Source: Trichosphaerium sp. ATCC 40318 (Eukaryota > Protista > Tubulinea). Taken from it: DNA of 64,000 nucleotides. The position numbers and the translations under genes are program-made. Shown in pieces: positions 45,001 to 59,560 of this stretch. Below the pieces are notes generated by a model, which saw nothing but the letters and a program-made list of their open reading frames with translations, had not been told where the DNA came from and made no database searches. Each line of letters opens with the position of its first letter. The stretch's first letter is position 1. Where the stretch lies: assembly GCA_038496445.1 (NCBI GenBank), contig JALMLS010000440.1, positions 248,001 to 312,000 of the forward strand, read 5' to 3'.

Positions 45001-47257
45001 TAGGGTTTGTGAGGTTTACTTTTATCTCCTGTGGTGTACCAGTTATAAACTCTTTGGGTGGATCGCTTATTTTAGCGAGAGGTTCTGAAGGTAAAAGTTA
45101 ATAGATATCAAATACAAGCACAAAGATTGAGTTACAAAGAAATCCTTTCGTACGTGTCTCAGGTACTGTAAATGTTGAAGATAACATCTCATCATCTCCG
45201 TAATTAACTTTAATACTAGACTCTCCGCTTTCTTGAGGAACAAATTCAATAGCGTATTCGCCTTCGCCTTCTAAAGGTAGTATCTTTACTTCTCCTTTTG
45301 AAGGTACGCTAACTTTGATTTTATCCAAGTCTGGTTTGAAAGGTTTGCCATCTTCCTTGTTTGCAAACTTGACAACGCATTTTACAGGAGAATCTTCATT
45401 AAGATCCTCAGGTAAGGCTTCCAGCGTAGCAGAAGGCACTAGTCAAACATTAAAAAATAGCAAAACGTTGAAGAATAAGATACAAAAGAAGTCGGATTCC
45501 GTGCCTATTTTAGGTGCTGGCGGTTCAGCTTTAGGTTCTTCTGGAGCCTTTTCTGTTTCTTTTTCTTCTTTGGAATCATCTCCTCCTTCGTCAGCTTGAA
45601 CCTCAGCGTTTTTAAAGTAAGCCAAATATGTAGCCATAGCCAAATCATCGGGATGATCTACGATATCTTCTGGCTGTAAAATACTTGGTATGCCAAACTT
45701 ATTCTTGGCAATTTCCATGGCCCTATAGTAAATATTAGTTAACAACGACCACTTGTCTCCTCAGAGAAAATATATAGAGCCATTGCGAGATAGACAAAGC
45801 GACACAAAAGTTCAACAAAAAAAATAACAAAACCAAGTACCGAGCAACATCTTTGTACGCATCTCCCTAGTGTTGTTATTAGTGAATAAAATATATTAAC
45901 GCGTTTGGTTACCGTCATTCCAGACAACGGACATGACCCTTTTTGTAAACTATCTACTAGCGCTGTAAGAGCTTTAGCATCACTCCATCTAATAAAACAA
46001 TTAGAAAATAAAGCTACTTTTTTGGATGAATAAAGCGCACCCTTTTTTGAAGCTAGTCACTTCAACAGGATAATCTAAAAATTATTAACACATGCTACGT
46101 ATAGTAGTGTTTATTTTTTAACCTTTGATCTGTTCTTTGATCCATCTGTAATTTTGTTAGAGGCGAAAAAATTAACGACGTTTTTTTTTTCTTTTCAAAA
46201 CACGTACGCAAGCAATGCGTCTTTGACTTGTTTCGCATTTTTTCCTTTACCTCCCTACGTCAATCATTAATATTTAAAATATCTCGCGTTCCATCTTTAA
46301 AAAATATGGACGTACTTTTGACACGTGATAACGAAGTATAAGAGTCCTGTAGATGTCAGAAAATTTAACAATAAAAACGTGTTAAACAAAAAAACTCCTC
46401 ATTACCAGATTAACCCAAGAACAAGACTTTCCTTGCCGTCATGAATATCCTCTCCTCCTATATTCACAGTACGAATACCTTGATCCTCAATGAACTTGAG
46501 AGCCTAGTTTACGCATCAGGAAAATATAGTTGGAACGCGGTACAGCCACAAAACGTTTTTGTACAATTTTTTTCGGAGTTTTTTTATTCAAAAACAAAAA
46601 CGCCGATCGCGTGGTTCTTGACGCTCAGTAGATTATGATACCCTTTACTAAGAATGGACAACAAAATAAAGAAAAAAAATATCACGTGATACAAAAAAAA
46701 AGATTGTACCACTAAAAAACGCCAAGACATCAAAAACAAGCCAAAGAAGGCGTGACATGTCGAAATAAAACAAAAACAAAAACACAAAAAAAAAAACTCT
46801 TCACCGTACAATGTTTATATTCTCAATCATCTGAAACTTCATACGTGGCTTCTTACTATACCTTGGAAGAGGCTTATCTGATATTTCCTAAAAGATATCG
46901 GTAACGGACTTGACAGTTTTATCAAAGAAGCACTGTCAAGATAACAAGGTACTTACGCCTAGAAGCTCTAATAATTTAACACCACTTTTTAAATCTTCTA
47001 CCAAATCTTTTATAGCAACATCTTCACCTAGCTCGCTCATATGGGTGTTACACCATCCTTTAAACGCCTAAAAAAAAAGGTTTAAACAATCACGTGAGTA
47101 TCCACGAGGTGGAACAAAAAAAAGATCGATAACGTAGTTAGGAAAGCGGGAAACTGTTTAATACGATCCATAATGGAAGCGCGGTAAAAAACGCGGTTTA
47201 AAGAATACTTACGTTCTTCTGGGATCGTATCCAAGCATTTGGATCTTTTTGCGCCAT
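30050..47257 (-). CDS. Giant filamin-like protein: CH1-CH2 actin-binding domain, about 40 Ig-like modules, C-terminal 4-TM domain
   Basis: WIRSQKN|AFKGWCNTHM...DLKSGVKLLELL...NIGGEDIHDGKESLVLGLIW|TLILRYH (CH1). WSDAKALTALVD...FGIPSILQPEDIVDHPDDLAMATYLAYF (CH2). About 95-aa acidic modules, mostly one per phase-1 exon. In-frame canonical splices lead into four hydrophobic helices and a stop at 30050. One apparent 1-nt frameshift near 33060. Confidence 0.85.
34130..44041 (-). repeat. Three-module (about 1 kb period) coding super-repeat inside the filamin-like gene
   Basis: Recurring order X (DDIKATLGDEDVECTPTDNPSEFKIPL), Y (KDKLAVTV...VEVGDSDTLG), Z (PDEIIAGSESQLTLQMTDKESGDP). About ten cycles, near-identical in the core 34850-42370. 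Confidence 0.9.
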
Positions 47258-47762
47258 ATTTGGGCGTAAAAAAAATAAACTAGAGGTGCTGTTGGTAAAG
47301 TGGCTTTTGTGGAAATGAAGAATAAGAAACGGAAAAAAATGTGATTTCCAAATATCAGAAAAAAAAAAAACTCCTACTGACACGTGCTGAGTATGAGCTC
47401 ACCAAAGCAAATAACCCAATAAACAATACTGTAGTAGTACAAATACTTATAAACAAAGCCAAGAAATGACAACAGAAGCACATTGAAGGTGAGACCTGAA
47501 TGATGCAATGGACTTAACTCCACAATGGAATTCTCAACGACAGTGGCACCTACACCAGCTTCCAACTAACATACTTTACATCATCTCAGCAGCCATAGCA
47601 GCTCTACCAGTTGCCAAAATTGCAAGCAGTCTCGTGATAAGAAGCAAACCGATTTTGAACCTGAGCATTTTCAAGAATGAGGCAAAAACTCAAAATTGAA
47701 GCATACTGTCAACAAGTACGAACTACAGAATACAGTGTAAAAATTAGTTTGTGATTTATTAA

Positions 47763-49134
47763 TCAAATGTCTGATTGATCCCAAAAGGAGTTGGCACATA
47801 ATGGATCCAAAGTACATTCGAATCTATCATGACAAAATACAGCACATACATTATCAACACAGTTGGATGCAAAAATACAATCATTTTCTTGAACAAGACG
47901 AAAGCATCTTGCATGACTTTGACAACTTGTTTGAACAGGTACTGTTGGATCCACGTTGATTGACGATAATGTTGGTGGCTCACAGAATGCTGCTGTGCCT
48001 TGCCTGTAAAAAGGACGGTAAGTATTATCACTTGACCATTCATACGTACACAGAACTACCTTCATTTGAACGAATTGGAGGATCTTCTCTGGCGTCTGTC
48101 ACAATCGCTGCTCCGATATTATCAATTTGACCAGCACCAACCATACCTACAATGACACTACAAGATACTTCTTCGTTTTCATCAAGAGTTGCTGTAAAAC
48201 CAATAGCACCATCACGGGCAATAGATGATGCTACATTTATACAATGAAGCGAAGATGAATCAATAACAGCAATAGATGTATCAAAAGCGAGAGTGGCAAT
48301 GATATTCTCAGTTGTTGCTGGTAATGAGTTGTAGTTTTGACACAGGACTCGTATTTCGATTTTGTCACCCACACTCAATTCTTGAAGATCTATTTCACCA
48401 ACAGATGATATTGAATGCCTAGATTAATGTTAAATCGCATCGGTTTGATTAGATACATACCAACAAGATACAATCGGTTGAGAGCATATGTAATCGAACG
48501 AAGTATCTGTTCCATGTCGAATGGTGTGTATTTCTACTTGAACAAGATCTACTGATTCAAGTGTAGCAGCTTGATTACCATAAGGTATGCATACATCAAC
48601 TCCAGGAGGCATAAATATGTATTCCGATACTAGCTCAGAAAGGGTAACTATTTTGAAAATGAATTCACTAAAGATTGACTCTTTAAAGATAGCTCTTATA
48701 TCTATAACACCATCATTGCGAATAATATGAAAATTGTAACAACCTGTAGTTGAGGTTAGGTAAACTTCACTTTTAGATCAACGCACTGGCTCCGTTTTGA
48801 AGGAAGTTGATTGGATTTTGCAAAGTATCTACAAGTTGAGTACCACCAGCGTATCTTAGAGTACAAGATCCATTTACCCCAACGCCATTATTAATAGCAA
48901 AATTGGCTCCACTCGTGAAAACACAACTAAAAAAACTATCTATACCGACGCTATCATACTTTGCTGTTGTAACCCTCACACCTCCAACAATAGAGCTTAT
49001 AATTAAATTAGAGCTTCTTGAAGGGGTGTCAAGAGTTGCTTCTACTGTAGAAGGGAAGTCAAACGGTCCATTTGAATGGCGTGTATAGCTGTCACAATAA
49101 ATACGAAGAAACATAGAGTGAGTGTTTGATACAT
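47763..49134 (-). CDS. Secreted protein copy A1: variable N-domain + DUF11-like Ig domain + Cys-rich tail (apparent 1-nt frameshift near 49066)
   Basis: Signal peptide MYQTLTLCFFVFIVTAIHA; 4 exons; VGDKIEIRV.CQN...TLDENEEVSCSV...GQIDNIGA...DP...SNEGS (DUF11-like); tail CQSHARC...CIFASNCVDNVCAVFC...CANSFWDQSDI. Confidence 0.75.
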
Positions 49135-49753
49135 CACACGTGTGTTTTGATCTATTTTTGGTTTTTACTTTGCTTTCACAATTTAAGATATTGCATCGCG
49201 GTATTGGGGAAGTTCCTTATCAAATACTTGCGAAACATAGCTACAAAAGTCATGTTCCATTTGATAATAATGAAGAATGTAGCTACTTTTCTTGTGGTAT
49301 CATGTTCCATGTTATAGTAAACTGGTGGTTGAAAACAGCAGTTTGAAACGTTTGTAAGAAAAACGAGAGGAATCACTGTAACCATATTTTAAGTATCTTT
49401 ATAGTTAGTGTAAAAGGGAATGGCAAAGTGGGAAGGCGGTTTGGTGCTCACAATCTGTTGTGAGTTTCTCAGATTACAGCGGTGCGTATTACGTTCCTTT
49501 GCTGCTCTTAGTTTTCAACTGGAAAGCAGAAAAATAACTTTACATTTCGTTTATCTTGCCTTGAAGAAGTTCTCAACAACATTTTCCCTTACCCTTTCTA
49601 TGGAATTGTAACAGTTGTAGAGAACGAGTTTAGCGTTCTTATGTCAGGGAAGTACCGAAGACAGTAGGTGTAACACATTCCAATCTATGCTGTATCTTGA
49701 AATAAACTGTGAACCAAAAAAACTCAAAACCAAAAATAGACTAAACACACGTG
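49135..49753. promoter_or_regulatory. Shared divergent promoter of pair A1/B1
   Basis: 619-bp gap between divergent ATGs. CACGTG lies within 3 nt of each ATG and the ends are imperfect inverted repeats. Conserved in the second pair. Confidence 0.6.
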
Positions 49754-51140
49754 ATGTACCAAACAGTCGCTCTTTGTTTTTTCGTATTCACAGTAATTAC
49801 AGCAATCCACACCTTTCAAATAGACCCCTTTAATGTAACCTCTTCTACTGTGGCTAGCCCTAATAATCCAAGTACAGTCAATACCGTTTTTGATGTGTCT
49901 ATTGCTGGAGGAAAGCGTGATTTGATGGCAACATTGCTTCAGGGACAAGTTGAAGAGCTAAAACTTCACTGTGACATAGCCTTCAATACTATCATTGAGC
50001 TCTGATTTGACTGTACAAGGAAATTGTACAGTTGTCTATTCTGGAATTGATTTATTAAATCCTCGAATGCCAACGCCAATAAACTTTCTTCAAAATGGAG
50101 CTAGTACGTTGTCATTATATTTTTTCTTTGAATGAAGTATTTACTTTACATGCTAAGGCTGCTTCAACTTTCGTATTATTACAAACGATAATGGAGTAGG
50201 ATTGAGAGGCCAGTTTTGGGATTCACTTTCACCTCATGTCGTCACTCTTTCGCATCAGCTCACCATACCAATTAGTTCTGCTATAGATGTATGTATACCG
50301 TTTGGAAATGAAGCAAGCCTCCTCGCATCAGTAGATAGAGTAGAACTTGCCTTGGAAGGTTCAATACATTTTGATGGGGCAGTACAAAACATGTGCTCTC
50401 AACCGATTGTATCTTGTTGGTATGTACTCAAGAGAAATGATGAGCGATCTAACACCAAAATAGGCATACAATAGTGGCCATTGGCGAAGCAGATCTTCAA
50501 GAATTGAATGTTGGTGATCAAATCACAATACTAGTTGCCTGTAAAAACTACAACTCATTACCAGCAACAACTGAGAATATCATTGCCACTCTCGCTTTTG
50601 ATACATCTATTGCTGTTATCGATTCATCTCAGTACTGTGTTCATCGACTGCAATTTCTAGAATCGCAATTGGAGGTGTTCTTGCTTTTACAGCAACTCTT
50701 GATGAAAACGAAGAAGTATTTTGTACTGCAGTATTTGATTTGGTTGGTCCTGGTCAAGTTGATAATATCGGAGCAGCAATTGTTACAGACGCCAGAGAAG
50801 ATCCTCCAATTCGTTCAAATGAAGGTAGTTCTGTGTATGTAAAATACTATTTGAATGGTCAAGTGATAATACTTACCGTCCATTTTATAGGCAAGGCACA
50901 ACAGCATTCTGTGAGCCACCAACATTATCGTCAATCAACGTGGGAGGTCAAGATCCAACAGTACCTGTTCAAACAAGTTGTCAAAGTCATGCAAGATGCT
51001 TTCGTCTTGTTCAAGAAAATGATTGTATTTTTGCATCCAACTGTGTTGATAATGTATGTGCTGTATTTTGTCATGATAGATTTGAATGTATTTTGGATCC
51101 ATTATGTGCCAACTCCTTTTGGGATCAATCAGACATTTGA
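49754..51140 (+). CDS. Secreted protein copy B1 (two apparent frameshifts near 49990 and 50640; possible pseudogene or consensus error)
   Basis: Same exon structure as the other copies; SIAGGKRDL N-domain; DUF11-like exon; Cys-rich tail ending WDQSDI. Confidence 0.7.
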
Positions 51141-51353
51141 TTTAATAAATCACAAAGCTATTTCACATTGTAGTATGTACTTGTTGATAATATGCTTCAA
51201 TTTTGACAGTCATACCAGTAATAAACCATTAACTATTCATACTCTGTTAATGACTACTCAACAAAGGTAGTTTGAACATTTACAAACAAGTTGAACGATT
51301 TTCATAAAATGATGCACAATTACTTAAAGGATCTTTCACATTTTCTTCAAAAC

Positions 51354-51890
51354 AGATCCTTTTGTTGTCCCTTCTATTGTAACGACCTGACAAGTATCCC
51401 ATTACCTTTCTTGGAATCCCTATCACGTTTTTCTACATCCTTGGCATCACTTGATATCTCCAATCCTTTTGATCAACGACAAATGAATCTCAAGCTATTG
51501 GAAGAGCTTACAGGTACGAACTCAAACATCAAAACCATTAGTCTTTTTTTTTTTTGCCACCAACTTTTGACAATTTATGGTCGTGTGGGACGTTCTTGTG
51601 GCTCGTTTTGTTGTCAAGAATACGTTAGAACATGAGCATGTTTTAAACTACAAGAGGAAGAAAGCAAAAGGTAGAGACAAAGCGTGAATGAAACCAAAAA
51701 ACAACATTTAACTTTTTTCTTGTTATAGATGCTTCTAGCTCACCAAAGAAACAATCAAAGAAATCAAGAGCTGTTCTTGTAAGAACAAGAAGATTTGGTA
51801 CTTTAATGGCAAGTAGTGGTATATTACCATTCAGCATTCAAGGCTTTGTTGGCGGACAAGCAATAATTTTCTTATTGGAAAAAACTAAAT
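51354..51890 (+). pseudogene. Possible LRR (RNI-like) gene fragment
   Basis: STSLASLDISNPF-like LRR segment bounded by splice-like sites. No start codon or coherent continuation was found. Confidence 0.3.
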
Positions 51891-52114
51891 AAAAAACCAA
51901 GATGTAAAAGTTGATTTTTCTTTCGCTTCACGTATCTCGCCTTGCAACTATGATTATTGCCAATCAGATGCTCCCTGTTTCTGATTTCAGGATGACATAA
52001 TATTCTCTCTACAGGTAGTTATTTTTATTTCACCGACCCTACACCTTAGTAACATACAATGTCCTGCTAATTCTGTTTTTATTTTACCTAACTTTGCACA
52101 ATACCTCTTTTTTT

Positions 52115-54009
52115 TCATATCTCATTATCTTCACTCAGTGGGGGCAAGACGTCTTCGTCTTCAGCATTCATGTCAACAACATTCATGTATTTGCTCATGT
52201 CTGGTACACCAGTTCTTGCTTCACGTGATGATAGCACATTTCTTCTAGACGACTTTGTTATTGGTATTCCTGTCCTTACTTCAAATGGTCGTAGTGCATT
52301 ATTCCAACGCGGCATTTTCTTTGTTCGTGGTATTCCTGTCCTTGTTTCTCCGAATTTTGAGGGTTTGTTTTGGTTGTTAGTTTTTTTATGCTGTCTTTGT
52401 AACTCAGCAGCCTCAGCTAATAAGGCATCTTTGTCCTCGATCAATAGCTCATCATCTTCACTCAGTGGGGGCAAGACGTCTTCATCTTCAACATTCATAT
52501 TATCAACATTCATGTATTTGCTCATGATTACTGCCATTATTTCACTCCTTGTTAGTGGTAAACCAGTAAAATTCTTGACAAACTTTGTGTAGGGAATACC
52601 AGTCTCGATTTCAAATGCATTCAATCCAGATAACATATCCTCGATGGGGAACTCAGGCTTTGTTTCAGGAACACCACTCTCAAGTTCAGTGTTGTTCATC
52701 AATGTCAAGTTTGGTTCTTTTCTCCTGCTTCTATTTTTCTTTTGAGGTCGAGATTTCTTTTCTGGCATCATACCACGCATACCCTTTGTGTGAAGTTCGT
52801 TGGGTACTTGCCTATCGGTGCAAACCTAAACAGAATAAAGTCAGAAACGAGAACTCAAAACAACTTTGGCATAACAATTCTAAATTTGTATACCTCATGC
52901 CAAACAGTTATCCTTGGTTTGTTTCCATACTGTATTCTATGATTACCAGGTGGTATGGCTTTATTCGAAGCTTTTTCCGTAGCATAACCACACCACAATA
53001 CAGCGCACATGGGCGGTATGTCAATCCACTCATCATCTTGAGGGTCATGGAGTTGTAAGCCTTTCGTGTTTGACCCTAGGTTTAAAGCAAACAACCCTGG
53101 GTCGTAGTGTGCGATACAATTCATTGGAGGGACTGTGCGCTTCTACAAAAATGAGTAAGATAAAGAGAACGTGGTTTATTGTCATTATTGTAAACAAAGG
53201 TAGACGTACCTCGTTGTTGTAATAGTGAGCGAAATCAAGCATGCCATAGTTTGGTTTTTTTGAGTCGGTTTCGAGCATTGGTAGAGTTACACGCTGGCTT
53301 AACTCCTTTACTGAGCATCCAAATAATGTACTAGATGTTGCTTCCATAATTTGGTGAAGAACATCGTCCATCATTACTGAGAGAGGAGAAAGTGTAGCTT
53401 GTAGTTCCTGAGGGTAAAGAGACTTTTCAATGTAACTGAAAAAAAAAACAAGTCAGTTATTTGTGCGACACAACTGTACTTTTGAACATACCTTCCAGTA
53501 AGAATACGAAAGCTCTCTTTATGTGGAACAGCTAGAACATAGATTTAGTATCTCAAAAAGCCAGTGGATAGAAACAATTGAAAGGAACTTTTTTTGTGGA
53601 TATTTTCACGAAAATAAATTTACGGTTCAAAAAATCAGTGAAATGAACGGCCTGTCTTTGGTTTGTGGATACGTACGGTTATATCCCATTACCGTTGGGT
53701 AGTGGTATGTCTCTTTGTATTTTTTATCCTTGGAAAAGAAGCGTTCTGCAGCTTTCATGCTTTCCTTTGCCATTGTATTCATACGCTTGTTTAACTTAAA
53801 TACAGCCCATCCACGGCGTTTAAGGATCTTGTGGAGTCTATTTATTTCATTTTGATCCTTTTTTAGGACTTTATCTATTTCAATAGCTGGTTCATTTGAC
53901 TACAGGCCATGTTAGTTGTAAAACAACGAATTCAGAGTTTTAACGCTAAACGTAGACGCACCAAACTGCCTCCTTGACCTGAAAATGATGTTGATTGGCT
54001 CGTATTCAT
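52115..54009 (-). CDS. 2-oxoglutarate/Fe(II) oxygenase (IPNS-like fold) with repetitive C-terminal tail
   Basis: RRGWAVFKL...AERFF N-domain; facial triad AHYDPG...GNHRI; GLQL; KPRITVW 2OG-binding Arg; in-frame splice to the 221-aa tail ORF 52115-52780. Confidence 0.85.
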
Positions 54010-54209
54010 GTTATCTAAAACTCAGAATGAAAAAAATAACACTTTAGCTCAGAACAGTATTCACGTAAACGAGCCGGCAACTTTCGCACCAACGCACACG
54101 CCTTTTTTTTTTATTATACTTCTTAGGAGTGATAGACTTTGTGTTGTGGATGTGGTGTTAAAACAATATCACTAGAAGCATTTACAGAATTTATTCCACT
54201 CTACCATAA

Positions 54210-54421
54210 TAGATATGGCAGAAATACCGTATGTACCGATCTCGGGCTGAAACGAAAAAAACGGTTCATAAACGGTTCAAACGGTGCGCTGCCACAAAAA
54301 CCTTAGTGAAAAATTTTAGGTTCACTGAATGAAGAACACAGTCTTGTTCTGCACCGCGGTTCGGACTAAAACCGAAGTCAAATGAAAACGGACCGGTATT
54401 AGACCGGTATTTGCCACTTTA
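54210..54421. mobile_element. hAT-type MITE (212 bp)
   Basis: 8-bp direct repeat TACCATAA at 54202-54209 and 54422-54429. Imperfect terminal inverted repeats tagatatggcagaaataccg / cggtatttgccacttta. Several internal AAACGG and ACCG motifs. Confidence 0.75.
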
Positions 54422-54490
54422 TACCATAATGCTCTGTCAACAAGTACGAACTGCAGAATTCAGTGTAAAAATAACTTGTGATTTATTAAA

Positions 54491-55868
54491 TCAAACGTCT
54501 GATTGATCCCAAAAGGAGTTGGCACACAATGGATCCAAAGTACATTCAAATCTATCATGACAAAATACAGCACATACATTATCGACACAGTTGGATGCAA
54601 AAATACAATCATTTTCTTGAACAAGACGAAAGCATCTTGCATGACTTTGACAACTTGTTTGAACAGGTATTGTTGGATCTTGACCTCCCACATTGATTGA
54701 CGATAATATTGGTGGGTCACAGAATGCTGCTGTGCCTTGCCTATAAAATGAACATTAAGTATTGTCACTTGACCATTCAAATAGCATTTTACGTACACAG
54801 AACTACCTTCATTTGAACGAATTGGAGGATCTTCTCTGGCGTCTGTCACAATTGCTGCTCCGATATTATCAATTTGACCAGGACCAACCATACCTACAAT
54901 GACACTACAAGATACTTCTTCATTTTCATCAAGAGTTGCTGTAAAAGCAAGAACACCTCCAATTGCGATTCTTGACTTTGTGTTTACACACACCAGTGAG
55001 GATGAATCGATAACAGCAATAGATGTATCAAAAGCGAGAGTGGCAATGATATTCTCAGTAGTTGCTGGTAATGAGTTGTAGTTTCGACACGTGACTTGTA
55101 TTTCGATTTTGTCACCCACACTCAATTCTTGAAGATCTATTTCACCAATAGATGATATTGTATGCCTAGTTTGGTGTTAGATCGCTCATCATTTCTCTTG
55201 AGTACATACCAACAAGATACAATCGGTTGAGAGCACATGTTTTGTACAACCACATCACTAGCTATTGAACCTTCCAAGGCAAGTTCTACTCTATCTACAG
55301 ATCCAAGGTGGCTTGCTTCATTCCCAAACGGTATACATACATCTAGCGCAGGACCATTTCTGATTGGTATGGTGAGCTGATGCAAAAGAGTAACGACATG
55401 AGGTGAAAGTGAATCCCAAAACTGGCCTCTCAATCCTAGTCTATTATCGTTTTCAATAATACGAAAGTTGAAGCAGCCTAACCTCTTGTTAATACTTCAT
55501 CCAAAGAAAAAATATAATGACAACGTACTAGCTCCATTTTGAAGAAAGTTTATTGGCGTTGGCATTCGAGGATTTAATAAATCAATACCGGAATAGACAA
55601 CTGTACAATTTCCAAGAGCACCAGTATCAGAGCTCAATGATAGCCCACCGAACAACGTTCTACAGCGAACTTGTACTGCCCCTGACATTGTTGCTATCAA
55701 ATCACGCTTTCCTCCAGCAATAGACGCGTCAAAAATGGAAATGATTGTTTTTGGATTGTCAGTGTTAGCGATTGTATCAGAAGCTACATTAAAGGGATCT
55801 ACTTGAAAGGTGTGGATTGCTGTAATTACTGCGAATATGAAAAAACAAAGAGTGACTGTTTGATACAT
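54491..55868 (-). CDS. Secreted protein copy B2 (apparently intact)
   Basis: Signal peptide MYQTVTLCFFIFAVITAIHT; ORFs 55497-55871, 55137-55433, 54460-55125 and 54491-54691 join through three GT-AG introns. Confidence 0.8.
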
Positions 55869-56510
55869 CACGTGTGTTTAGTCTATTTTTGGTTTTGAGG
55901 TTTTTTTGGTTCACAGTTTATTTCAAGATACAGCAACATAGATTGGAATGTGTTACACCTACTGTCTTCGGTACTTCCTTGACATAAGAACGCTAAAACT
56001 CGTTCTCTACAACTGTTATAATTCCATAGAAGGGTAAGGGAAAATGTTGTTGAGAACTTCTTCAAGGCAAAGTGATATCCGAAATGTAAACGACCTTGTA
56101 AAGTTATTTTCCTGCTTTCCAGTTGAAAACTAAGAGCAGCAAAGGAACGTAATACGCACCGCTGTAATCTGAGAACTCACAACAGATTGTGAGCACCAAA
56201 CCGCCTTCCCACTTTGCTCATTCCCTTTACACTAACTATACAGATACTTAAAATATGGTTACAGTGATTCCTCGTTTTTCTTCTTACAAACGTTTCAAAC
56301 TGCTGTTTTCACCAGTTTAGTATAAGATGGAACGCGAAACAACAAGAAAAGTAGCTACATTCTTCAGTGTTATCAAAATGGAACATGACTTTAGTAGCTA
56401 TGTTTCGCAAGTATTTGATAAGGAACTTCCCCAATACCGCGATACAATATCTTGCTTAAATTGTGAACCCAAAAGTAAAAACCAAAAATAGATCAAAACA
56501 CACGTGGGTG
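55869..56510. promoter_or_regulatory. Shared divergent promoter of pair B2/A2
   Basis: Inverted copy of 49135-49753, with CACGTG next to both ATGs. Confidence 0.6.
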
Positions 56511-57899
56511 ATGTCTCAAACACTCACTCTATGTTTCTTTGTATTCATTGGTACTGCGATACATGCTTTTCAAATAGATCCTTTTGAAGTACCTTCTATT
56601 GTAACAGCAACTCCTGACGACACTCCAAAAACACTCATTGTATTTTCAAATGCTATTGTTGGAAACGTGCGTATTGTTACAGCGAAGTACAGTGGTTTCG
56701 ATCCATTGGGTGAGTTTTCTTGTGGGATTGGATTGAACTCCGGCAACTTTTTTATTGCTAATGGCATTGCGGATAATGGAACTTGTATTCTTAGATATGC
56801 TGGTGGCACTCAACCTGAAGATACCCTGACAAATCCAATCAACTTCCTTCAAAACGGCGCTAGTACGTTGTTAACCTAAAAGTGAAGTTTATGCTAAATC
56901 AATGATAGGTTGTTACAACTTTCATATTTCCCTCAATGACGGTATTTTCGAAGCGAGAGCTCATTTTCGAGATTCATTCACAGATGAAATAGTTACCCTT
57001 TCTGAGCTAGTATCTGTTTTCTTATTTATGCCTCCTGGAGTTGATGTATGTATTCCTTATGGTAATCAAGCTGGTAAACTTGAAGCTGTAGATCTTGTAG
57101 AAGTAGAAATACGTTCTGTTCAATATAGGACAGATGCTGCGTTCAGTTACATATGCTCTCAACCGATTGTATCTTGTTGGTATGTACTGAAAGAGAAATG
57201 ATGAGTGATCTAACACCAAACTAGGCATACAATATCATCTATTGGTGAAATAGATCTTCAAGAATTGAGTGTGGGTGACAAAATCGAAATACGAGTCACG
57301 TGTAAAAACTACAACTCATTACCAGCAACAACTGAGAATATCATTGCCACTCTCGCTTTTGATACATCTATTGCTGTCATTGATTCATCTTCGCTTCATT
57401 GTATAAATGTAGCATCATCTATTGCCCGTGATGGTGCTATTGGTTTTACAGCAACTCTTGATGAAAACGAAGAAGTATCTTGTAGTGTCATTGTAGGTAT
57501 GGTTGGTCCTGGTCAAATTGATAATATCGGAGCAGCAATTGTGACAGATGCCAGAGAAGATCCTCCAATTCGTTCAAATGAAGGTAGTTCTGTGTACGTA
57601 AAATGCTATTTGAATGGTCAAGTGACAATACTTAATGTTCATTTTATAGGCAAGGCACAGCAGCATTCTGTGAGCCACCAATATTATCGTCAATCAATGT
57701 GGGAGGTCAAGATCCAACAATACCTGTTCAAACAAGTTGTCAAAGTCATGCAAGATGCTTTCGTCTTGTTCAAGAAAATGATTGTATTTTTGCATCAAAC
57801 TGTGTTGATAATGTATGTGCTGTATTTTGTCATGATAGATTTGAATGTACTTTGGATCCATTGTGTGCCAACTCCTTTTGGGATCAATCAGATATCTAA
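56511..57899 (+). CDS. Secreted protein copy A2 (apparently intact)
   Basis: Signal peptide MSQTLTLCFFVFIGTAIHA; ORFs 56463-56879, 56902-57201, 57265-57972 and 57699-57899 join through three introns. Confidence 0.8.
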
Positions 57900-58373
57900 T
57901 TTAATAAACATTTATTATTACAAAACAATCTACTACTTTTATATTATGTTAATGAAGCCTCTCAACATGTAAGGTGGTTATTTAACACAACTGAACAGGT
58001 GAACTTTTATTGTTAATGATAGCAACTACTGGTAATGCCCTCATACGAATTAACGGTTTAAAATTATTATTATAAGTTGTATAACAGTGGTTTAGTACCT
58101 GAAAAATGGCAAGCCGGCCTTATAAAGAAATCTTGTAACCTATCACCCAACACTGAGTCTACTGCTCTCATTGTAATGAAAACAAAATGGATTATACAAA
58201 CTAGTTGAATGATACAGAAAACACGTGTTTCGGTATCTCACAAGTGACGAGGATCAGCAGTGAAAACGACAGTACTCAGCACATTTTAGGTATAGAGTGA
58301 ACCACAATTGAATCCGAACAACTTATCCGAAGTCAAATGTGGTAAACAAAAAAAAAACTACAAAGTATTTGCT

Positions 58374-59560
58374 ATGTTGTCGGTTGTTGCTATTTTTGTA
58401 GCTTTGTTTATCGTTTACATATTTTTTATACGTCGTACACGTAAAAGGATAAAAGGTCCTCCGGGTGAGCCTATACTTGGTAACATCAGGGAGTTTATAA
58501 GACAACCAACCGGTAATATACGCTACCAGCTACTGGAGAAGGTACTAGAAGCGTTAGATGTTGTTTTTGAATGACTTACGACAGTTAGTGGCGTAAACAG
58601 TATGGAGATGTCTATGAAATCTCCCTACTCGGCAGACAGCTTGTAGTGGTGTCTGACGCAGATGACATACGTTACATACTTAACGATCGACCTGGAGATT
58701 TTATTGCTCCGCCTATGTCTCCAAACGTGCTACGGGTACGTAATATGACTATTTTAGTACTTTACAAGCGTATAAGCTAACCTGTGGGTGCTAGGAACTT
58801 TCCACTAATGGGATGATGGCGACAGTTACAGGACCTCGTTGGAAGCGTTTAAGAAAAGCCGTTGCGCCATCATTTACAAAGGCAATACTCAGAAAGAACT
58901 TTAAACAGATATTTGACGTGTTTACTGAAATGATGGAAAAATGGCACGTGCTCGCCAAAACTGGAGAAGTTGTGTCTGATTTGTACAATCACACTTCTCA
59001 ATCTACTCTTGAAGTTATTTCCAGGACTACCCTCGGTATGCGTCCTTCTTTACTAGGTAAGAAAGATTTCGGAAAATACAGCGGTTGGCAAGCTGACATA
59101 TTGATTAGATGAAAAACAAAACCTCAGGTTCCGTGAAGCCTTGGCTATTCTGTTTTCCACAATATTTAAGAGAGGTAACTCGCCTTGGCCGTACTGGAAG
59201 ATTCCATACTGTAAACCCCAAGTACGCATATCAGGTGATCACATTCTGAAGCTAGTGTCACTAACAGACTACAAAAAGAAAGAAGCTTTTTTAGAAAACG
59301 AACTCAAAGAATTTGTAAATCCGTTCATTCAAAACGCTATTGATACCGCAAAAAAGAACGTACTGGAAGGCAAAGAACCATCTAACTTAGTAGAGGTAAA
59401 GCAGTGTTTTCTGTTTATTATTGTACTCCACTAATGACTTAAAAAGGCAATTGTTGATCACTCTGGCTGGACTGACGAAGAACTTTTTTCCAATTTAATC
59501 GGGTTGTATATCTCTATGCGCTGAATAGCTAAAAGAGGATTTCCGATACTCCGAATAGTG
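58374..59560 (+). pseudogene. Cytochrome P450, 5' half only (breaks off at the I-helix)
   Basis: N-terminal anchor and PPGEPILGN hinge; KQYGDVY; WKRLRKAVAPSF (C-helix WxxxR); TLEVISRTTL; ends TDEELFSNLIG. No AGxxTT, ExxR or FxxGxRxCxG motif follows in the window. Confidence 0.8.

Follow-up and report, generated by a model that had tools for sequence, protein, structure and literature searches.

A nested inverted locus of four related genes in Trichosphaerium sp. ATCC 40318: probable inverted duplication and patchy gene conversion in an apparently undescribed protein family

Comparable systems and geometry of the locus

The closest described gene arrangement to the one reported here is that of tgrB and tgrC, which form diverging pairs on one promoter, with 1-9 pairs per genome and frequent duplication, recombination and inversion (PMC12745789). 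A comparable geometry is found in a 64,000-nucleotide (nt) stretch of Trichosphaerium sp. ATCC 40318 (contig JALMLS010000440.1, positions 248,001 to 312,000), hereafter the window, whose own positions are used throughout. In this window, which is eukaryotic DNA of about 37% G+C with short introns, four homologous genes, named A1, B1, B2 and A2, are arranged as two head-to-head pairs around a unique middle segment, and the locus probably arose by two rounds of inverted duplication together with patchy gene conversion, in an apparently organism-specific family of secreted, disulfide-rich, all-beta and probably lectin- or adhesin-like proteins. As is the case for Dictyostelium tgrB1/tgrC1, paralogous and probably extracellular beta-sandwich proteins are encoded in diverging pairs on one promoter, and several pairs lie in one locus through duplication, recombination and inversion, with some copies broken (PMC12745789; PMC12142906). 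On the other hand, the Tgr proteins are polymorphic and transmembrane, whereas the proteins described here have no anchor and no Pfam domain, and the ratio of their nonsynonymous to synonymous divergence (dN/dS) lies below 1. Additionally, neither IPT/TIG nor any other Pfam family was matched at E values up to 10 by P0001 and P0002, two transcript-derived proteins of the family, and HMMER returned only their own family. The analogy with TgrB1/TgrC1, which had been proposed from the letters of this DNA alone (hereafter the sequence-only reading), therefore holds for the geometry of diverging pairs on one promoter, but not for the membrane anchor (by inspection) or for sequence membership (Pfam, HMMER).

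Other systems share single aspects of the locus. The ampliconic palindromes of primate sex chromosomes consist of inverted arms around a unique spacer, and arm-to-arm conversion homogenises their coding and non-coding DNA. Inverted arms, a unique spacer and homogenised coding and non-coding DNA are likewise present here; however, the arms measure just 3.4 kb and their homogenisation is patchy, the N-domain exons are 57-76% identical, and each arm is itself an inverted pair. In multigene families such as trypanosome VSG and Giardia VSP, the N-terminal domain varies while conversion maintains a conserved C-terminal part. The present family resembles them in its variable outer domain, constant inner part, clustered paralogs and mosaic copies, although its proteins are secreted rather than anchored and have other folds, and exclusive expression or switching is no part of the evidence here. 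The likeness to bacterial fibrillar adhesins and PEP-CTERM proteins is one of fold only, namely a CBM-like jelly-roll head followed by an adhesin-type immunoglobulin (Ig)-like domain, and contrasts with a eukaryotic host, the presence of introns, the lack of any DUF11 or CBM sequence match and a Cys-rich tail specific to the amoeba family. As in a shufflon or invertase switch, inverted repeats flank a possible invertible segment, but no recombinase was found among the open reading frames (ORFs) of the middle segment, for which Pfam gave only a 2-oxoglutarate (2OG) oxygenase domain.

The gene order is A1 (minus strand, 47763-49134), B1 (plus strand, 49754-51140), a middle of 3.25 kb, B2 (minus strand, 54491-55868) and A2 (plus strand, 56511-57899). 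The left arm (47755..51188) comprises A1, a shared promoter and B1, and the right arm (54437..57908) comprises B2, a shared promoter and A2; both were delimited by an inverted-repeat search (repeats I2-I25) and by local alignment of the left arm against the reverse complement of 54437-57908. The arm-versus-arm alignment extends over about 3.43 kb (47755-51188 versus 57908-54437) with an overall difference of about 12%, and it is a mosaic whose identity ranges from 57 to 99% per 100 columns, a likeness far beyond chance. At each of the four arm ends the homology breaks off sharply, giving way to unique sequence in the outer flanks and in the middle. Within each arm, the two genes again form an inverted repeat through their 3' halves, of 191 nt at 99% in A1/B1 and of 718 nt at 94% in B2/A2. 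The gene models and inverted repeats are thus in agreement with the sequence-only reading, which had described the order and orientation of four homologous genes, the inverted repeat through the near-identical 3' half of each pair, and the two pairs as inverted copies of each other. The start codons of the diverging pairs, at 49134(-)/49754(+) and 55868(-)/56511(+), are separated by a shared intergenic region of about 620 bp, which corresponds to 49135..49753 (bidirectional promoter) between A1 and B1 and to 55869..56510 between B2 and A2. When compared with each other, these two regions were 96.6% identical in substitutions, with a Jukes-Cantor (JC) distance of 0.035. No alternative version of the locus was found on any other contig of the assembly, and Rfam and tRNA scans of 47000-58500 gave no match.

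Starts, splice sites and stops were placed by conserved landmarks, which resulted in 4-exon models for all four genes, paralogs of about 410 aa with introns of 42-56 nt starting with GTAYGT (GTGCGT in one). Uninterrupted reading in the assembly was observed only for B2 (exons 55868-55529, 55477-55210, 55165-54797 and 54740-54491; 408 aa) and A2 (exons 56511-56862, 56909-57179, 57225-57593 and 57650-57899; 413 aa). The frame of A1 (exons 49134-48787, 48743-48461, 48418-48050 and 48003-47763) is broken by a 1-nt deletion at 49066/49067, just past the signal-like segment, and that of B1 (exons 49754-50103, 50158-50419, 50464-50834 and 50891-51140) by a 2-nt deletion at 49987/49988 in exon 1 and a 2-nt insertion at 50630-50631 in exon 3. 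None of the three breaks falls in a homopolymer. According to the site patterns of the four copies, most singleton changes fall in B1 exon 3 (37 in columns 801-1200). Splice phase and transcripts indicated that the Cys-rich frame is the one used in the last exon of all four copies. It was also observed that, in these last exons (57650-57899 in A2 and its three counterparts), the frame shifted by one base from the Cys-rich one is open throughout as well and would read as hydrophobic.

Divergence and transcription of the four copies

Synonymous divergence (dS) between A and B genes amounted to 0.8-1.9 for exons 1-2 but only to 0.02-0.28 for exons 3-4, and dN/dS ranged from 0.1 to 0.9 throughout, never exceeding 1. 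Between the arms, dS reached 0.13-0.55 in the N-domain exons (0.26-0.55 in exon 1), with a dN/dS of 0.57-0.63 for A1 versus A2. These exons are 57-76% identical between arms and lie next to the promoter, with its identity of 96.6%. Little difference among copies remains in the promoter, intron 2, exon 3, intron 3 and exon 4; introns 2 and 3 of A2 and B2, for example, are 0-7% diverged. As far as the last 30 nt of exon 2, four-taxon site patterns favored the A1A2/B1B2 grouping by 143 sites to 11, and they grouped intron 3, exon 4 and the 3' untranslated region (UTR) by pair, with a 100-nt A/B-specific island retained within exon 3 (57362-57460 in A2). The exon 2 tree (84/90) and the exon 3 tree (100/100) both recovered A and B as sisters, and the A-B distance was about ten times longer in exon 2 than in exon 3. 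A similar split was found in another head-to-head pair of the family on contig C45 (L035, G000:C45:28300-34000), whose 3' parts are 98% complementary (405 and 227 nt) and whose 5' parts are 76-80% identical. The dS split, the site patterns, the homogeneity of promoter and introns, the trees and the C45 pair together point to inverted duplication followed by tract-limited conversion. In fact, as in palindromes homogenised by conversion, non-coding DNA was affected along with coding DNA, and the tracts cut across the history of the genes.

Two other origins of this pattern were considered and rejected. Hypermutation resembling that of complementarity-determining regions (CDRs) was discarded as the main cause, since synonymous sites are equally diverged and dN/dS remains below 1; the saturation of synonymous sites in the N half indicates that the N-domains are old rather than hypermutated. 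The capture of a common 3' half by a distant paralog was also discarded, given the sister position of A and B in either tree.

Transcripts were obtained from the JGI sample proteins P0001 and P0002 and from Logan contigs of four runs belonging to three studies, mapped on 47600-53599; these Logan contigs contain 8-13% of the words of the stretch. P0001 and P0002, both from one JGI sample, were retrieved with exon 3 in a word search, and their source contigs (1036 and 1275 nt) are intron-less and therefore represent mRNAs, with splice junctions exactly as predicted. Transcript L032 is identical to A2 exons 1-2 in 402 of 402 positions. Transcript L031 starts 21 nt upstream of the B1 ATG, matches B1 in exon 1 (348/350, with two extra nt that keep the frame open) and B2 in exon 2 (268/268), and continues with an exon 3 like that of B2 and an exon 4 like that of B1. 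In transcript T031, all but one of the 447 variable columns match the letter of some genomic copy, and the switch points of the mosaic transcripts fall within stretches of about 80 nt without any difference between copies. Since the variable letters pre-exist in the copies and the switches occur in such identical stretches, chimeric short-read assembly is the simplest reading of these mosaics. For A1, a first contig of run X3 was spliced at all three predicted introns, and a second one contained exon 1 with one extra letter behind 49066, which restored the frame. First or second exons of all four copies were thus seen (A1 in X3, A2 in L032, B1 exon 1 and B2 exon 2 in L031), and sample S3 alone yielded an A1 contig and an A2-like 5' end. 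The presence of A-type and B-type mRNAs in one transcriptome is in line with the co-expression that the sequence-only reading had proposed. A firm call of A1 and B1 as a pseudogene pair was dropped, since the transcripts show intact first exons.

As a control, the P0008 transcript was compared with its genomic locus on contig C23, and only 3 mismatches and no indels were detected over 2021 nt (0.15%), with 98-100% identity in most exon pieces, which indicates that the sample belongs to the same species and that the assembly is generally free of indels. Compared with this control, the expressed first exons, known from few sources and from contigs, differ more from the assembly, by two single-nucleotide polymorphisms (SNPs) and an indel in 350 nt for B1 and by one SNP and an indel in 263 nt for A1.

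The protein family and the middle segment

The four proteins share a layout composed of a signal-like N-terminus, an N-domain of about 185 aa, an Ig-like domain of about 145 aa and a tail of about 60 aa with 10 Cys. By inspection, the C-terminus is hydrophilic and Cys-rich, and no hydrophobic segment follows the signal-like N-terminus, so that no transmembrane or glycosylphosphatidylinositol (GPI) signal was recognized. P0002 was modelled by AlphaFold2 from an alignment that combined family exons with relatives, and the N-domain was also modelled alone. The P0002 model reached a predicted local distance difference test (pLDDT) value of 85.7, with residues 21-350 mostly above 90 and the Cys-rich tail modelled poorly, and the N-domain alone reached 93.2. 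Foldseek on the whole model returned only multi-domain noise, with template-modelling (TM) scores of 0.2-0.3, and domain-wise VIA searches were informative. The N-domain (residues ~20-205) was predicted as a jelly roll, with middling Z scores to CBM29 (10.1), CBM11 (9.2) and CBM61, CBM6 and CBM8 (8.3-8.6), and its matches among solved structures also included phage receptor-binding and tail-spike domains (Z 8-10). The ESM Atlas shape nearest to the N-domain model (mff61a7c3ee19) belonged to a bacterial PEP-CTERM sorting-domain cluster (TM score 0.84 over 180/187 residues, root-mean-square deviation (rmsd) 2.5), and no sequence similarity of the N-domain to proteins of this cluster was detectable. 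Residues 202-349 matched the MG10 domain of bacterial alpha-2-macroglobulin (bMG10) as well as adhesin CLIPPER, antigen I/II and pilin domains, with Z 10-11.6 and rmsd 2.5-3.1 over 115-127 aligned residues. The nearest language-model feature clusters carry DUF11 with a score of 0.81, which serves as a lead only. Neither the exons nor the full-length proteins nor 21 domain sequences matched Pfam DUF11 (PF01345) at E values up to 10, and no Pfam CBM family was matched by exons or full-length proteins. The term "DUF11-like" is thus fair for the predicted fold, but unsupported as family membership. Of the common architecture given by the sequence-only reading, the signal-like segment, the variable N-domain, the beta-sandwich, the Cys-rich tail and the lack of a transmembrane or GPI signal were retained, but DUF11 was not recovered at the sequence level. 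Judging from the models, the proteins are probably extracellular and adhesin- or lectin-like.

The four genes belong to a family with at least 30-45 loci in this genome. The exons of A2 matched 45 places for exon 3, 33 for exon 2, 27 for exon 4 and 14 for exon 1, and many of these loci showed exon matches in the same order and spacing. Family loci were found as single genes, in direct tandem (C2, C127), in convergent (C98) and in divergent orientation (C45, C71, C5, C155). Near-identical inverted duplicates of family members were also noticed, divergent at G000:C71:162613-172682 and convergent at G000:C98:133141-145920. The small contigs C433, C402, C446 and C272 repeat parts of C98, C279, C104 and C127, respectively, and may be haplotigs. 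A HMMER search against 1.84 billion protein representatives resulted in 9 matches (cluster representatives), among which P0001, P0002, P0005, P0007 and P0008 all come from JGI sample 3300016894 and the others are labelled MMETSP or JGI; no relative outside this organism was found in that search. A metagenome contig scan for further transcripts gave no confirmed relative, Pfam searches with single exons, full-length proteins, eight relatives and 21 domain sequences returned only low-complexity extensin-like stalks, and PDB sequence searches with a single protein and with a profile had no match. As far as these searches reach, the family is apparently restricted to this organism, undescribed and without a Pfam family. 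P0008 (G000:C23:363906-366497) and P0007 (1092 aa) carry the same N-terminal two-domain module followed by long Thr/Pro-rich stalks, and P0008 ends in a transmembrane helix with a short cytoplasmic tail, which shows that the module also exists in a cell-surface-anchored form.

The middle segment (51189..54436) has no inverted homology. It had been described as a 3.2-kb spacer, and it turned out not to be empty, since two unrelated expressed genes and a dispersed repeat lie inside it. The first is a small spliced gene on the plus strand (51480..51909) with an intron at 51669-51726, supported by GT..AG-spliced contigs of runs X2 and X4. The second, a 2OG-Fe(II) oxygenase-like gene on the minus strand (52070..53782, 5' end approximate; PF03171, E 6.5e-7), has introns at 52824-52891 and 53143-53209, both of which are spliced out in a 1193-nt contig of run X1, and an acidic, repeat-bearing tail with an internal 83-nt direct repeat (D6) at 52117 and 52444. 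Both genes have a paralogous copy in the same order at G000:C66:243522-246545, with 79-84% identity. The dispersed two-part repeat (54206..54417), which the inner end of the right arm follows after about 20 nt, resembles a deleted transposon-like element and has dozens of copies with 74-87% identity on many contigs. Because its two parts are about 560 nt apart elsewhere, the present copy looks internally deleted, and it might be related to the origin of the duplication. The small gene at 51480-51909 showed high contig depth. In record 13 of run X4, a 531-nt high-depth contig, an A2-like 5' UTR and start (window 49095-49171) is joined to 51480-51909; the joined parts lie on opposite strands with 74 unplaced letters between them, and this record is probably a contig chimera.

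Origin of the locus and possible role

Near-duplicate, haplotig-like small contigs exist in the assembly (C402/C279, C433/C98, C446/C104, C272/C127), and the arms are linked by the assembly only, which would be compatible with haplotypes or a fold-back wrongly joined by the assembler. However, a fold-back would be near-perfect and without a spacer, whereas these arms are about 12% apart, with an N-domain dS of 0.13-0.55 against 0.15% in the control comparison of genome and transcriptome. Since the arm divergence exceeds this baseline, and since both arms have sharp ends, unique outer flanks and a unique middle with two expressed genes, a haplotype mis-join is very unlikely; exons 1 or 2 of all four copies also occur in transcripts, A1 and an A2-like end even in the same sample S3. 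Another explanation is that the left pair is a decaying duplicate and that B2 and A2 alone are functional, leaving a half-dead segmental duplication. It is suggested by the three frame breaks outside homopolymers, by the singleton-rich exon 3 of B1 and by the absence of indels from the control over 2021 nt. Nevertheless, transcripts of the same species hold exon 1 of A1 and B1 in intact frames, A1 is normally spliced, the A1-A2 dN/dS of 0.57-0.63 is not 1, and a four-copy repeat is more prone to consensus or polishing errors than the control gene, so that decay of the left pair is possible but rather unlikely.

The sequence-only reading had interpreted A and B as a two-component recognition or adhesion system like TgrB1/TgrC1, whose nested inverted repeats shuffle N-domains by inversion. 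Such a system would account for diverging pairs that share a promoter, the arrangement by which tgrB/tgrC pairs are defined, for the expression of both types in one sample, for N-domains that stay different while the surrounding DNA is homogenised, for transcripts that are mosaics of the four copies, and for expressed A1 and B1 sequences that differ from the assembly more than the control gene does. On the other hand, the proteins have no transmembrane anchor, no IPT/TIG and no Pfam domain, their architecture is shared by about 30 other paralogs, found as single genes or in tandem as well, dN/dS stays below 1 throughout, and 446 of the 447 variable columns of T031 pre-exist in genomic copies, as expected from chimeric assembly. 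The swapping of N-domains by inversion would change almost nothing, because the 3' halves are already 90-99% identical, and the ORFs of the middle include no recombinase. The geometry and the co-expression invoked for this interpretation stand, but A and B, whose family numbers at least 30-45 loci, are sister paralogs, and a shuffled two-component system appears highly improbable. The same low probability applies to a self/non-self or prey-recognition locus of a marine amoeba resembling tgrB/tgrC, in which selection would keep the binding domains different and recombination with nested inversions would make allele combinations; if this were true, its first traces would be seen in the mosaic transcripts and in the expressed alleles that differ.

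Under inverted duplication with patchy conversion, a first inverted duplication would have produced the diverging A/B pair on one promoter, and a second one, of the 3.4-kb pair, would have generated the palindrome around a unique segment with two unrelated genes. Since then, non-allelic conversion within and between pairs may have repeatedly homogenised the promoter and the 3' half, from which the N-domain exons would have escaped either by selection for difference or by a divergence too great to pair. Recombination between the inverted arms could flip the middle, as a by-product and not as a designed switch. The likely role of the proteins, as suggested by their predicted folds, would be extracellular binding of glycans or particles (prey, substrate, other cells), with the N-domain as the specificity part and the constant half as a common scaffold or attachment part. 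Several points weigh against this explanation. The linkage of the palindrome comes from the assembly only, dS is noisy in short, indel-rich exons, and some other cause may underlie the patchy hypervariability (e.g., B1 versus B2 at ~49935-49990). Either the assembled haplotype carries true null alleles of A1 and B1, or their frame breaks are local consensus errors in a repeat present four times, and the two mosaic JGI transcripts could be assembler chimeras or real recombinant alleles. Additionally, the function is derived from a fold likeness with middling Z and from relatives with mucin-like stalks or a transmembrane anchor. The locus represents an ordinary gene-family process, neither a demonstrated switch nor a new kind of system.

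The shaping of gene clusters by duplication and gene conversion is a well-known process, and the new part is the family itself, an apparently undescribed one whose proteins combine a predicted CBM-like head with an adhesin-type Ig-like domain and a Cys-rich tail. The locus also provides a clean small example of tract-limited concerted evolution, with a promoter 96.6% identical between arms beside a first exon of about 57-76%. If selection maintains the differences between N-domains, a search for the molecules with which free-living amoebae recognize prey, substrate or kin could well start from this family.

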